IMG/VR virus record: IMGVR_UViG_3300046665_000548
Location: 124,001 to 188,000 of that record
Length of the DNA stretch: 64,000 nucleotides
Direction: 5' to 3' (one strand)
This document shows positions 3,884-60,608 of the stretch, piece by piece. The notes under the pieces were generated by a model that ran no database searches, was not told the DNA's origin, and saw only the letters and a list, made by a program, of their open reading frames with translations. The position numbers were made by a program, and so were the translations under genes. How positions within the stretch are numbered: the first letter of the stretch is position 1; each line of letters begins with the position of its first letter.

Positions 3884-4172
3884 CGCATGTTGCCTGGACA
3901 CCCTTCCCACGGTCTGCCACGACGTTTCGGGTATCTGATGCGTAATTGCGGCCTATCGTATCGCAACTTTTTAGTTGTCACGAGACCGTGGCAAGACTGG
4001 ACCGAGTTGGGGCCGATCAAGAAACGTCTCGGGATCAAGACCAAATACAAGGTGGAGCCTTGGACACCATCAACGACGACAGTTCGTTGGTGGATCGCGC
4101 TAGTATGCGCATTTTTATTTGGACGTTACCTCTAAACTTGACCATTGGGGATGCATCGCTGTAAATAGAGAC

Positions 4173-4211
4173 ATGCGTAACCCTCGAAACCCAATCTTTG
4201 CTGTCGATTGA
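4173..4211 (+). CDS. putative leader peptide MRNPRNPIFAVD
   Basis: ATG 5 nt after TAAATA (4162-4167); its stop lies in a hairpin (4204-4234) abutting the GAGG SD of the next gene. Confidence 0.55.
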   Translation: MRNPRNPIFAVD

Positions 4212-4242
4212 GCGGACTTTCCCGCTTTAATCGAGGTACATC

Positions 4243-4812
4243 TTGTCTAAGAAAGATTGGCGCAATCTGGGCGCTGTAACTGTTTGCGACTACAACAACC
4301 GTCGCTATCAGTTCAACTCTCTTGCCGAAGCTGCTCGTTACTTTGAACGCTACATCCCCGACCTGAAAAAGGGTCACCTGGGATATGAGCAGTTTGAGAC
4401 GCGTCCCTACCGGCGAGTTTTCATCGGCGGCGATAGCCACGTGTTCTACGACGAACTCGGGCTCACCATTCCTGTGTGGAAAGTTCAGGAAGCCTGCCGC
4501 AACCTGCCCTACGAAGCCCGCAGAAGCCGCTGGAGCCGTTTCCCTGATTACGATCATGCCAAGCACTACCGCAACGGTAGCGTGCCTGGAGTGCGTTGTA
4601 GGCGCTGGCATCGCGGCACTGGATCGCCGCGTCTCCACACTCAGTCGGAGATTCGCGAAAATGACTTTGCGAACAACTACGATGAGGACTGCGCGGAATT
4701 CCAAATCAAAACGCGCGGGCGGCGCTCTAAGCTTCCCCACCAGTGGGACGATCCAATGCGCTCGCGGCGCGGCGACGGATGGAAGCAGCACCGCCACAAT
4801 CAGTGGCGGTGA
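4243..4812 (+). CDS. Arg-rich hypothetical protein (TTG start)
   Basis: GAGG SD at 4233; 189 aa; basic C-terminus LPHQWDD...WK...QWR. Confidence 0.65.
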   Translation: MSKKDWRNLGAVTVCDYNNRRYQFNSLAEAARYFERYIPDLKKGHLGYEQFETRPYRRVFIGGDSHVFYDELGLTIPVWKVQEACRNLPYEARRSRWSRFPDYDHAKHYRNGSVPGVRCRRWHRGTGSPRLHTQSEIRENDFANNYDEDCAEFQIKTRGRRSKLPHQWDDPMRSRRGDGWKQHRHNQWR

Positions 4813-54822: not shown

Positions 54823-55095
54823 TTAGCCCCATCGGAGCTTAAAGAGTGCGGCGTCACGTGCCCGTCTGAAATAGAAACTCGATTTGTACCATGTCCAGTT
54901 AAATCCTTCATCGTACATATCGTGAAAGATTCCACCATCCTGATAATGGATCGATCCGGTAATTGGAGTTTTAAAGATATGCTCACCCCACTCGCCAGCC
55001 TCCTGTAGAGGTCCGAATTCATTGAGCGTTATGACGTGAGGTAAGCGCTTCTTAAGCCAATCATCAAGCTCAGACTGTTTAACCCGCGTCGGCAT
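54823..55095 (-). CDS. paralog family protein (FYFRRARDAALFKLRWG)
   Basis: Shared C-terminal motif. Confidence 0.65.
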   Translation of the reverse strand: MPTRVKQSELDDWLKKRLPHVITLNEFGPLQEAGEWGEHIFKTPITGSIHYQDGGIFHDMYDEGFNWTWYKSSFYFRRARDAALFKLRWG

Positions 55096-55903
55096 GGAAC
55101 ACCGGATCGGCGTCTTCGAAGATCATTTCCACTCGGTTTTTTATCTTTAGTATCTTTGGGAAGTGGAACGTCCGTAGACGACTTCTCACAACGGGACCAG
55201 TCGGCCGTCTTGCCTCTGGAATGAGAACTAATTTCTCAGCAGGAAGCTCAGCCTCGAACACCTCTGAACGAATGAACGTCCCGCGTTTGAACGCTTCGGG
55301 ATAATCCTCGAACGTCACACCCTTCTCGCTCAGCAATTCAACCATTCCCTGACGAGATACGCCATTAAGCCGCTTGTGGCTCAAATGATGATGTGCGGCC
55401 ATCGAAACGGAATTGCGTTCGGCGTCGAGCACTCTCCAGAGAATTGCATTGGCAGCTTCTTCCTTTGACGGAAGCTCAAACACCCGAGCGTCGAAATGCG
55501 GAAGCTTGTCAGCATTCTTCGCGAACTGTTCGCTGCTTGCTAGCACAGCCTGATTGAAACGGGCCGTCGCCATGCCAGCAAGGATCGAGCATAGCTTCTG
55601 CACCTTGCCGCCAAACATCAGTTCCTGAGCCGGGTTCTCGCCATCGAGGTACCAAAGCAGAGAAATTTCATCCGACTGCGTATAGCCGATAACCGCATTT
55701 GTTTTCTGAACCAAATAAGATGCGGTCTCAACCATGCAGGCGTGAAACTCGGCGTCGAACGGGCGGACCATTCCCTTAGTGAACTTAGAGAAACCTCGGC
55801 CGTCAATTCGAGCATAGAGCGGCTGCCGCGCATCGAAACGAAGGGAGGTCTGCGCCGACTCGTACTGTTTCATACGGTCGCCCAAATCATCTTTAAACAT
55901 CAC
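55079..55903 (-). CDS. tRNA(His) guanylyltransferase Thg1-like protein
   Basis: RMKQYE, RIDGRGFSKFT, GYTQSDEISL, FGGKVQK, FDARVF. Confidence 0.93.
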   Translation of the reverse strand: MMFKDDLGDRMKQYESAQTSLRFDARQPLYARIDGRGFSKFTKGMVRPFDAEFHACMVETASYLVQKTNAVIGYTQSDEISLLWYLDGENPAQELMFGGKVQKLCSILAGMATARFNQAVLASSEQFAKNADKLPHFDARVFELPSKEEAANAILWRVLDAERNSVSMAAHHHLSHKRLNGVSRQGMVELLSEKGVTFEDYPEAFKRGTFIRSEVFEAELPAEKLVLIPEARRPTGPVVRSRLRTFHFPKILKIKNRVEMIFEDADPVFHADAG

Positions 55904-56568
55904 TGTCCTCTCGGAGGAGACCTTTTCGTTTCAGTCCGGCAACCTCGTCGTCAGGCACGAATCTTTTCATCCCGTTGATGAACGTGACTTTCGTGTAGCT
56001 GGTTGTCGTCCCACCCGTGTAAAGATCAAGCTCGATCTCGCGCTTGATCTCGTCTAGTACACGCGACCGTTCTTCGTTGAGTTCAACGACAAGCTTTTCA
56101 TTCAGCCGGAGTGCTTCAACGGCAGCAAGAAACTCACTCACGTTGCCTTCATTACGAGGATCAGCGTGTAGGGCTTCGACAGCCTTCCGGTGCCGCTCAC
56201 GCGCCTTCTCGCCATCAACCTTCCACGCTTTCGTGTAGGCTTCGTTAGCAAGGTCGAAACGTTTTCGCTCGTCTTTGGTCTGGGCTCGCATTACTTTACT
56301 CGAAAGCATGTATGATAGGGACGAACTAGCTGAAAATACTCGTCCTTTTTGGGCTCAGATGGCTTCGCGGACTTTTCATCTTTTTCCGCGTCATCTTCTT
56401 CTTCGGTAGCGTGCTCTTGGGCTATACCCGTGTGAGTCTTTACCAAAGCGAGGCCCGCTGCTTCGCACAAGTCCTTGGAAGCGAAACCGTCGAAACGATC
56501 TCGCTCCAAGCGCACGTCAGCACCACTCGATTGCTGGATGAAGAGCAGCGTGAATAGGAGCGTCCACA

Positions 56569-56988
56569 TTAGACGAGCGCATCCTTGACTACCTGCGACG
56601 CAACCTTGCCGTCATAACGACCACCGTAGTTGTCCTTCAGGTGCTTCATCACGATGCCCATGTTCGCGCTGGGGTTCTCTCGGCGGATGACGAGAACGAC
56701 TTCACGAAGCTCATCCTGGCTCATCTGCTGCGGCAGATAAGCTTCGAGAATTTTGATTTCGGCCGCGATCTTGTCCGAGGGGGCAAGACCCATGGTCTCG
56801 CGGGCATTCTTGAGGAACTTTTGAACCATCGCGATAGCCTCCTCCTCGGTGGTCTCGCGATTACCCGCGTCCTTTCCGACGCGATCCGCTTCGCCCTTCA
56901 GGGCGGTAAGCAGACCGATGGCGGTCTCGTCCTTTGCCTTGCGAGCCTGGAGTTGATCGGCGCGAATGCGCTCCATCAGCGTCGTCAT
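56569..56988 (-). CDS. GatB/YqeY domain protein
   Basis: ARKAKD, EIKILEAYLPQQMS, MGIVMKHLK...G.YDGK. Confidence 0.9.
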   Translation of the reverse strand: MTTLMERIRADQLQARKAKDETAIGLLTALKGEADRVGKDAGNRETTEEEAIAMVQKFLKNARETMGLAPSDKIAAEIKILEAYLPQQMSQDELREVVLVIRRENPSANMGIVMKHLKDNYGGRYDGKVASQVVKDALV

Positions 56989-57030
56989 GATACGGTCCTC
57001 TATATTAAAGAATGCGTGTGTACCAGAAAA

Positions 57031-57573
57031 TCAGCTTTTGGCAACATTGTTTCGTGAATTTGGTGCAGAAGAACCACTGCACAGGAGTGGTACCAGAGGG
57101 CGCTTCGCCAGATTGCTGTTGGCATATCGGTTATCGTGAGAGACCTCTTCGCCAAGCCAGTCCGGCGTAACAAAGTCTTCATCCTCTCCCCCAAGCTCGA
57201 TTTCGGCCGTCACAAGCCCGTCGTGCGCACCTTCGAACACATCCACATGCCAGACATGCGAGGGATCATCTTTAACCAACACGTGATATCGCGTCTTGGA
57301 AAGAACGTACTCGCACAATTTGAGCATTTCGTTCGCGTCATCGTATGGCACCTCATATTCGTACTCGGCGCGAGATACCCCGGATGTCTTGCCCTTGACT
57401 GTCAAAAATCCCTGACGCCGGTCGCCGTCCACGACTGTACGAACGCGCACGACCGATGGCTTGGTTTGAAGGTAGCCCTGGCAGAGCTTTTCGCCGTTGG
57501 CGCTTTTCCAGCAGCCAATCTCCCGCCAGCCATCACTCTTAACTAGGAATTTTCTCTCAATCTCTACAGGCAT
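57031..57573 (-). CDS. CYTH-domain triphosphate tunnel metalloenzyme
   Basis: EIERKFLV, QGYL, VRVR, TVKG, EYEY, AEIEL. Confidence 0.92.
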   Translation of the reverse strand: MPVEIERKFLVKSDGWREIGCWKSANGEKLCQGYLQTKPSVVRVRTVVDGDRRQGFLTVKGKTSGVSRAEYEYEVPYDDANEMLKLCEYVLSKTRYHVLVKDDPSHVWHVDVFEGAHDGLVTAEIELGGEDEDFVTPDWLGEEVSHDNRYANSNLAKRPLVPLLCSGSSAPNSRNNVAKS

Positions 57574-59539: not shown

Positions 59540-59817
59540 GGCAAACTCCTCTGTTATGGGCTCAGATGATGTAAATCACCAACGCATATATTGTACGATA
59601 CTTCACGTATACACACAAGAGCTATGTTATTTGCTCAAACGACTTTGTTGCTTCAACTATTGTTCGTTTTTACTTTGGCTTGTTTTTGGCTTTACTTGTC
59701 TAATCTTAAAGTATGCACGTTTTGAACAGTATTCTCATAGATCAATACAATCATAAAACGAGTGACAAATTCGGAGAATCTGGTAAATACAAGCCATTCC
59801 CAACTATGGAGAAGGAA

Positions 59818-60135
59818 ATGCGTAAGGTGCCCAGGCGAAGGAGCACGACTGCTCGTGCTCTGTCCGACACTCGCTACCGTCAGCGGGTAGTCATCTCGAA
59901 GAAGGTTTATTCCAGGAAGGCTCGATCTCAGAAGGTCGAGCCTTCTGACTTCCGGGGATGCGGAGATTGGGTGGGGTATTCTCCGCATATAGTGCGGAGA
60001 ATGATTGGCACGCCCGGAGAGATTCGAACTCCCGACCTACAGGGTAGAAACCTGCCGCTCTACCGGCTGAGCTACGGGCGCATGCGATTATTTAACATTC
60101 TCGATACCAAAAGAATAGCAAAAATGCTTGCATAA
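59818..60135 (+). CDS. ArfA-like (alternative ribosome-rescue factor) basic protein, probably from a truncated mRNA
   Basis: ARALSDTRYRQRVVISKKVYSRK resembles ArfA [30 protein letters not shown] SD; in-frame hairpins before any stop. Confidence 0.55.
   Translation: MRKVPRRRSTTARALSDTRYRQRVVISKKVYSRKARSQKVEPSDFRGCGDWVGYSPHIVRRMIGTPGEIRTPDLQGRNLPLYRLSYGRMRLFNILDTKRIAKMLA
60006..60081 (-). tRNA. tRNA-Arg(TCT)
   Basis: Reverse-complement cloverleaf, loop TT-TCT-AC, G73, CCA; TAAATA at 60089-60094. Confidence 0.92.
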
Positions 60136-60233: not shown

Positions 60234-60608
60234 ATGTATTACGGAGATTTCAGCAACACCGAGGACGTGTGCAGAGCGTTCGACATCGGCTACGTCGATG
60301 GCGTAATCGTCTTTGCGGCCTACGAGATAGACGGGTACGAAGGCTCCGCCGACGTGCTTTATATCAAGGACGGCAAAATCTATCATGTTACGGGCAGTCA
60401 TTGTTCCTGCTACGGCTTGGAAAATCAATGGTCGCCCGACGAGATGCCCATCGAGGCTCTGCGACACGTCGTGGAGAATGGGAGTTACGGCATTATGCAC
60501 GACCACAAGGAGGGCTTGCTCTCACTGTTGGAAGTGTTGCACGAACTGAACCTCGAAGGAGCTAAGCCGGAAACGGTTCAAATGGCTCTAAAGCTCGTCT
60601 ACGGATGA
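60234..60608 (+). CDS. conserved-type hypothetical phage protein
   Basis: YEGSA...GSHCSCYGLE; AAGGAG SD. Confidence 0.65.
   Translation: MYYGDFSNTEDVCRAFDIGYVDGVIVFAAYEIDGYEGSADVLYIKDGKIYHVTGSHCSCYGLENQWSPDEMPIEALRHVVENGSYGIMHDHKEGLLSLLEVLHELNLEGAKPETVQMALKLVYG

Follow-up and report, generated by a model that had tools for sequence, protein, structure and literature searches.

A short open reading frame (ORF) that faces a tRNA-Arg gene in a phage genome of 607,744 bp (51.7 % G+C) raises the question of whether it codes for a ribosome-rescue factor whose mRNA is built to lack a stop codon. The window, as the whole stretch of 64,000 nucleotides analysed here is called, corresponds to bases 124001-188000 of the source virus record. 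The frame opened by the ATG at position 59818 of the window crosses two inverted repeats, continues antisense through tRNA-Arg(UCU) and reaches its first in-frame stop codon, a TAA, at 60133-60135. The initial annotation had seen a resemblance to the ArfA core in this ORF and, behind it, the architecture of a non-stop mRNA. What it described of the DNA itself is present: TAAATA at 59784 with the Shine-Dalgarno (SD) sequence and the ORF, the arms of two hairpins that fold better than shuffled sequences, and the passage of the frame antisense through the tRNA gene (ARAGORN, 60006-60081, minus strand) to a distant stop.

The genes arfA and brfA carry within their ORF a stem-loop or a rho-independent terminator that leads to a non-stop mRNA, and their product is destroyed unless trans-translation is saturated (PMC8012679). 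ArfA was reported only from beta- and gamma-proteobacteria and its active form has ~45-55 residues (PMC8012679). It is described as a factor with which the host backs up tmRNA.

The small gene and its genome context

An ortholog of the ORF product, P0075, a protein of 75 residues with 72 % identity, came up when 1.84 billion representatives were searched with a profile. Its gene is located on a 92.5-kb contig (L091) whose gene order is identical to that of the window. Both feature the genes of YqeY, of a CYTH protein, of HPF and of a protein of unknown function (222 residues in the window, 224 in L091), then the small ORF and the convergent tRNA-Arg(UCU). These are followed by a gene coding for 124 residues, a gene coding for 85 (window) or 86 (L091) residues and the gene of an AMP-binding enzyme. 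The features of the locus, and those of the remainder of the phage genome (G000) that bear on it, are the following (strand in brackets):

55079-55903 (-): Thg1-like tRNA-His guanylyltransferase
56569-56988 (-): YqeY-like protein, syntenic in L091
57031-57573 (-): CYTH domain protein, syntenic in L091
58083-58556 (-): homolog of the ribosome hibernation factor HPF/YfiA (S30AE 2e-12; TIGR00741 48.7 bits, above its cut-off)
59781-59789 (+): extended -10-like promoter element TGGTAAATA (TAAATA at 59784-59789, preceded by TGG), kept base for base in L091
59808-59817 (+): SD sequence GGAGAAGGAA, the same in the window as in L091, in both directly 5' of the ATG
59818 (+): ATG start codon, opening MRKVPRRRSTTARALSDTRYRQRVVISKKVYSRK..., conserved in L091
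59818-59919 (+): ArfA-like conserved coding core, codons 1-34 (MRKV...VVISKKVYSRK), delimited by the phrog_20887 match and by pN/pS
59915-59946 (+): hairpin 1, 14-bp stem and CAGA loop, codons 33-43, from its fold and a compensatory change in L091
59947-60135 (+): read-through tail of the ORF to the TAA at 60133-60135, frame and stop different in L091
59977-60003 (no strand assigned): hairpin 2, 12-bp stem and 3-nt loop, codons 54-62, from its fold; missing from L091
60006-60081 (-): tRNA-Arg (anticodon UCU), convergent with the arfA-like gene (ARAGORN), also present in L091
G000 ~528348-528947 and 530480-531505 (-), outside the window (L090, L100): PrfH, from an equivalog match, and RtcB
G000 576377-576796 (+), outside the window (L094, 372-749): permuted tmRNA, from Rfam

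Over codons 12-34 the window and L091 display 10 synonymous and 4 non-synonymous differences (pS 0.54, pN 0.08), which gives a pN/pS of ~0.15 in the plus-strand frame of the ORF. The element TGGTAAATA is conserved in L091 amid upstream sequence that is diverged or deleted. The ORF from 59818 is almost certainly a real coding gene, its pattern of differences being that of purifying selection in the plus-strand frame.

In place of the ATG at 59806 L091 reads CTG, while it keeps the SD sequence and the ATG at 59818, and the start is therefore placed at 59818. A start at 59713 was discarded on account of its distance, over 60 nt upstream, from the conserved TGGTAAATA; the SD sequence and ATG 59818 directly follow this element. 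The sigma-70 site TTGAAC-18-TACAAT, called by a promoter scanner at 59722-59751, was also rejected since it shows no conservation in L091.

Could the ORF be spurious, the region being the 3' flank of tRNA-Arg with terminator or processing hairpins? On the minus strand the two hairpins do come a short way downstream of the tRNA and matches to curated families are lacking, but the low pN/pS of the plus-strand frame and the conserved SD sequence and ATG speak against such a reading. So do the match to phrog_20887 and the hundreds of homologs in unrelated DNA, most of them without a nearby tRNA. This alternative is extremely improbable and effectively refuted.

Downstream of the tRNA gene, the 124-residue gene at 60234-60608 of the plus strand, conserved in L091, codes a protein that matches phrog_8792 (7.7e-25). 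It also matches phrog_21421, labelled 'integrase' though the protein is far too small for one.

The phage carries 57 tRNAs as well as a permuted tmRNA, whose tag is ANDNVAVSEYALAA and which scores 65.1 bits with the Rfam class alpha_tmRNA and 102.5 bits with tmRNA_permuted. The phage genome yielded no SmpB gene. A PrfH equivalog (217.6 bits) is coded ~1.5 kb away from the RtcB gene. PrfH and RtcB are known partners in the rescue and repair of damaged ribosomes. The HPF/YfiA gene is two genes from the arfA-like gene, a position kept in L091, and a run of genes related to translation and tRNA is found upstream of it on the minus strand (55079-57573). ARAGORN identified as well two amber suppressor tRNAs (anticodon CUA, labelled Pyl) and a further tRNA whose anticodon has four bases (ggaa), at G000 1944-2020 and 4091-4256 of the plus strand, outside the window. 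TAG is the rarest stop codon among the long phage ORFs (146 of 781), yet it is still used.

The phrog_20887 family and its relation to ArfA

The ORF matches phrog_20887, a family of unknown function, over residues 8-44 (E 1.4e-5, 26 bits, positions 4-40 of the 46 in the profile), and it is the best match to phrog_20887 in the whole phage genome. A 37-member family profile retrieved 1063 clusters at E<=1e-3. Judged from these sequences, phrog_20887 is a large family of mostly phage proteins, with the core N-P-x-A-[RK]-x-L-x-x-P-x-[YF]-R-x-R-V-V-K-S-K-K-x-Y-x-R-K. Relatives include 46-residue 'hypothetical proteins' of the Sinorhizobium phages phiM12, M7, M19 and N3, and further copies are found in phiM9, in Rhizobium and Agrobacterium phages, in the 490-kb Atu_ph07 and in T4-like Acinetobacter phages. 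They are encoded at 76 IMG/VR loci and at 7 loci of metagenome-assembled genomes (MAGs). At least 2 of these MAG loci lie among cellular genes (for an AAA ATPase and AraC regulator at one, for an esterase at the other). The family was also compared to DUF7230 (PF23876): 12 of the 37 members touch this model at 16.8-22.5 bits, below its cut-off of 27 bits, and neither the window ORF nor P0075 gives a match to it.

All homologs of rhizobial and Agrobacterium phages fetched from GenBank are annotated as 'hypothetical' or were not called as genes, and none is annotated as a rescue factor. The Atu_ph07 homolog (L097, record 368250-369133) is unannotated. In phiM9 and RHph_N34 (together with IC12 the loci L095, L096 and L098) the annotated small ORF overlaps the convergent gene by ~65 nt, while in IC12 the open frame reaches into the convergent gene and the annotated ORF is shorter. 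These overlaps and the omission in Atu_ph07 are probably gene-calling artefacts caused by a stop-less design.

The hosts of the cultured relatives are Sinorhizobium, Rhizobium and Agrobacterium. On account of these hosts and of the type of tmRNA, the host of the present phage is probably alphaproteobacterial. Homologs in contigs of alphaproteobacterial and Stellaceae MAGs (L084, L085 and L086, 38-245 kb) sit among cellular-looking genes, and for this reason some alphaproteobacteria may have a chromosomal ArfA-like gene. A GC hairpin lies within the ORF of the MAG homologs L084 and L085.

The relation of the family to ArfA is distant. The ORF has no ArfA match in Pfam PF03889 or NCBIfam at E<=10, and its residues 1-55, 1-40 and 8-36 are also blank with PF03889 at E<=10. 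PF03889 was likewise without a match when the entire phage genome was scanned in all six frames. ArfA was not found either by a single-sequence phmmer search of the PDB or by a word-indexed homolog search of the ORF. Single-sequence searches returned nothing, and the link is seen by profiles only. When the 37-member profile (A2) was compared to all PDB chains, the six top matches were all ArfA (E 8.5e-5) and the others had E >=0.7. A 79-member profile (A5) matched ArfA chains only, with a best E of 1.4e-6. Its hhalign alignment to an enterobacterial ArfA profile, built from 13 proteins starting from the E. coli arfA locus, covers 42 columns and ArfA residues 8-52 (probability 95.8 %, E 8.2e-9). 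Thirteen of the 37 members touch PF03889 at 11.9-17.1 bits, under the curated cut-off of 25.5 bits. The likeness to an ArfA core claimed in the initial annotation, and the HMM comparison with ArfA that it had suggested, hold for the family profiles, which match only ArfA in the PDB; they fail for the single ORF, which has no match in Pfam (PF03889) or NCBIfam.

Family and ArfA have in common the motifs N-x-I/A...L-x-D-P-x-F/Y-R-Q-R-V-x-K-x-K-K...Y-x-R-K. Their alignments open a three-residue gap opposite G35-K36-G37, the GKG of KKGKGSY, and KK[GA]KG is present in none of the best 150 family representatives. The window copy does not have K-H after R-K, a motif which some relatives have in that register. 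In the ribosome ArfA's middle section (His21-Glu30) sits in the A site and its basic tail occupies the mRNA tunnel (PMC5378476). The alignment of the family to ArfA spans both this middle region, which contacts the A site and RF2, and the basic tail. The family is very probably a remote homolog of ArfA, the ORF being ArfA-like at the level of the family only.

Off the ribosome ArfA does not adopt a fold of its own. ORF residues 1-46 were co-folded, without an alignment, with the RF2 of Caulobacter (RF2_CAUVC). The resulting ipSAE was 0.34, whereas the best of three controls had 0.00; this is rated as weak support and is not counted here as evidence of binding. Of 78 solved complexes 51 reach the co-fold mark, as do 2 of 108 mismatches, and all 4 passing mismatches have 0.34-0.59. 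The model may also remember a solved ArfA-RF2 complex. The partner pLDDT was 56, and at least 81 % of the contacts agree between runs.

These data bear on an alternative role for the peptide, which would bind the ribosome and fill the vacant mRNA channel with its basic tail, blocking or competing with host tmRNA-SmpB or other factors without recruitment of RF2. In other words it would act in anti-rescue or in takeover of host translation. The missing ArfA-specific GKG insert, the failure of this copy with the curated ArfA model, a probable host class not known for the use of ArfA and the weak RF2 co-fold (0.34) would all agree with it. However, the homology extends beyond the tail alone to the middle of ArfA that lies in the A site beside RF2, a tmRNA-gated non-stop layout suits a backup factor better than an inhibitor, and the phage's own tmRNA argues against a blocking of trans-translation. 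Anti-rescue is an unlikely role for this peptide.

Hairpins and the position of the stop codon

The perfect 10-nt arms of hairpin 1, GAAGGCTCGA (59916-59925) and TCGAGCCTTC (59936-59945), fold with an energy of -25.2 kcal/mol (z -3.6), and none of 200 dinucleotide shuffles is as good. The hairpin starts 7 nt after the conserved Tyr codon, the R-K codons forming its 5' flank. At the sequence level the gene thus has a stem-loop within its ORF, at 59915-59946, ahead of a stop located at 60133. The corresponding stem of L091 has GAAGGCCCGA and TCGGGCCTTC in place of GAAGGCTCGA and TCGAGCCTTC, with a compensatory change from U-A to C-G. Its 5' half, GCT to GCC, is synonymous, and its 3' half, GAG to GGG, exchanges Glu for Gly. 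Pairing is preserved though the amino acid changes, and by this comparison hairpin 1 is under selection as an RNA structure. The tail that follows it, TTCTGACT, has 4 T in 8 positions, one below the terminator rule of the scanner. Hairpin 1 resembles a weak intrinsic terminator.

Hairpins at this position recur among the relatives. The best hairpin within 90 nt after the Tyr codon was scored at 58 distinct loci of the family, 27 of which have a hairpin of <=-12 kcal/mol that starts at most 25 nt from this codon. At this threshold the first in-frame stop is located 5-209 nt downstream of the hairpin in 26 of the 27 loci. With the same limit of 25 nt, hairpins of <=-17 kcal/mol are found at 23 of the 58 loci, compared to 8 of 165 control segments drawn at random from these loci (Fisher p 1e-9, in a table whose rows are not phylogenetically independent). 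The stems belong to ~13 unrelated sequence classes at the same codon position as hairpin 1. Textbook intrinsic terminators, a GC stem and then a T-run, lie within the ORF in, for example, phiM12/phiN3, L010/L024/L027, L022 and L054. The L029 group has one common hairpin; the tails behind it are unrelated and reach their stops 32-209 nt downstream. A hairpin is lacking and the stop is an ordinary one in about half of the family, for example in a marine group (D-R-R-Y-H-Q-R-V-V-K-S-K-K) and Acinetobacter phage ZZ1, so the switch is common but not universal.

In the marine group without hairpin (L014-L021, L028, L038-L053, L088 and similar loci) a second ORF, read in a different frame and starting with a C-P-T-C zinc-ribbon motif, overlaps the small ORF at its 3' end, a pattern that recurs across diverged loci.

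That a hairpin follows the core directly in frame, with no stop before it, as the initial annotation had it, is backed by the compensatory change in L091 and by the recurrence in relatives. A non-stop design of the arfA-like gene is likely on these sequence grounds.

The convergent tRNA nevertheless offers another use for the hairpin. The ArfA-like gene would be real and hairpin 1 a mere bidirectional terminator shared with tRNA-Arg. The protein would be constitutive and devoid of any sensing, made from read-through transcripts that end at 60133 or released by other means. The tRNA is convergent in both the window and L091, the homologs of phiM9, RHph_N34 and IC12 likewise run into convergent genes, and some family members have ordinary stops. 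Yet an ordinary gene would stop before its terminator, whereas in ~13 independent lineages all loci but one have no stop ahead of the hairpin. Several of these loci have no convergent gene nearby, the phiM12 copy even preceding a gene on the same strand, and the frame of the tail differs between the window and L091, which shows that the full-length product is not conserved. A shared terminator as the whole explanation is quite improbable.

The tail itself supports the non-stop design. The window and L091 do not share the frame in which they pass antisense through the tRNA, nor the stop at which they end; the read-through tail is hence not a conserved product. The segment 59947-60135 is probably untranslated in normal use.

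Hairpin 2, with the arms ATTCTCCGCA (59978-59987) and TGCGGAGAAT (59993-60002), has an energy of -19.8 kcal/mol (z -5.7) and beats all 200 dinucleotide shuffles. No T-run accompanies it on either strand. L091 lacks a 43-nt stretch that holds it (within 59955-60003) and that in the window separates hairpin 1 from the 3' end of tRNA-Arg. This stretch is unique in the phage genome and consequently is not a dispersed repeat. Its absence from L091 and its uniqueness rule out hairpin 2 as part of a sensor, and the initial annotation, which had counted it in the architecture, has to be amended in this respect. Hairpin 2 adjoins the tRNA 3' end and more likely concerns the tRNA gene than the arfA-like gene.

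Proposed function and comparison with known systems

The position of the conserved hairpin, in frame and ahead of any stop, is the reason to propose that the gene reports overload: like arfA, it would probably signal that the main ribosome-rescue system is saturated. Transcription would end at hairpin 1, or the transcript would be cut there, to yield an mRNA without a stop codon; the hairpin might at the same time be a bidirectional terminator shared with the convergent tRNA-Arg. Ribosomes would stall at the 3' end of this mRNA. As long as trans-translation has spare capacity, provided by the host tmRNA-SmpB and the alpha-type tmRNA of the phage, the peptide would be tagged and degraded. When non-stop complexes saturate tmRNA, for example upon mRNA cleavage induced by the phage or by a defence system, untagged peptide would be released. 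The functional product is expected to be an ArfA-like peptide of roughly 43-46 residues, which would bind ribosomes with an empty mRNA channel and recruit host RF2 to free them.

The balance tips slightly in favour of the gene working as such a tmRNA-gated, RF2-dependent rescue factor. The rescue-factor reading of the initial annotation keeps its footing in a gene under selection, a remote ArfA homology and hairpin 1, and loses hairpin 2; the ORF also fails the curated ArfA model and lacks the GKG motif.

A broader reading, for and against which we hold the chances about even, is that the family constitutes a large unrecognised clade of ArfA-like rescue factors, present in phages and in some alphaproteobacterial chromosomes, whose tmRNA-gated stop-less switch was kept through repeated replacement of the hairpin. 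In the present phage the factor would be part of a ribosome quality-control kit run by the virus, together with its own tmRNA, PrfH-RtcB, HPF and 57 tRNAs. Such a kit, if real, would maintain the supply of ribosomes while mRNA is being shredded by the infection or by host defence. If the family works as proposed, phages would actively manage ribosome rescue and the known range of ArfA-type factors would widen to alphaproteobacteria and their viruses. The locus would also be a natural experiment in which the coding tail drifts while the RNA hairpin stays. The Sinorhizobium phages phiM12 and phiN3 and the Agrobacterium phage Atu_ph07 are cultured relatives that can be used as test systems, and the copies of rhizobial and Agrobacterium phages that now stand as hypothetical or uncalled would gain an annotation.

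The E. coli arfA hairpin is cut by RNase III. E. coli ArfA (YhdL, PF03889) resembles the product of the arfA-like gene in being a small basic peptide with a stem-loop in the ORF ahead of the stop, and in the convergence of its 3' end with a neighbour, mscL in the case of arfA and tRNA-Arg in the window. In contrast to ArfA, the window copy has no PF03889 match, its GKG is deleted and it has no K-H; it is encoded by a phage whose host is probably alphaproteobacterial, and its hairpin is shorter (14 bp). The arfA-like gene falls outside the reported range of ArfA, being phage-borne, accompanied by an alpha-type tmRNA and represented by copies in alphaproteobacterial MAGs.

BrfA of B. subtilis has a rho-independent terminator within the ORF, gating by trans-translation and dependence on RF2 (PMC8012679); its likeness to the present gene was assessed for the layout only. 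Unlike the latter, BrfA was reported only from the genus Bacillus and makes its own distinct N-terminal contacts with RF2.

Two other phages of alphaproteobacteria code proteins that were named ArfA from a Pfam match: g10 of Citromicrobium phage RXM (PMC8953757) and gp30 of pelagiphage HTVC027P, which is reportedly transcribed both early and late in infection (PMC12753301). They are known from these annotation statements, without an analysis of mRNA architecture or function. A literature search found no description of a phage arfA with a stop-less mRNA design, nor of a divergent clade lacking GKG.

A further comparison is provided by cultured members of the same family. Gp232 of phiM12 and its phiN3 homolog (46 amino acids) have a GC hairpin and T-run within the ORF, 10 nt before the stop. 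The copies of phiM12, phiN3 and Atu_ph07 differ from the window copy in sequence, with ~41-46 % identity, and those of phiM12 and phiN3 differ also in their layout, which combines a canonical U-tract terminator with a nearby stop and has no adjoining tRNA.
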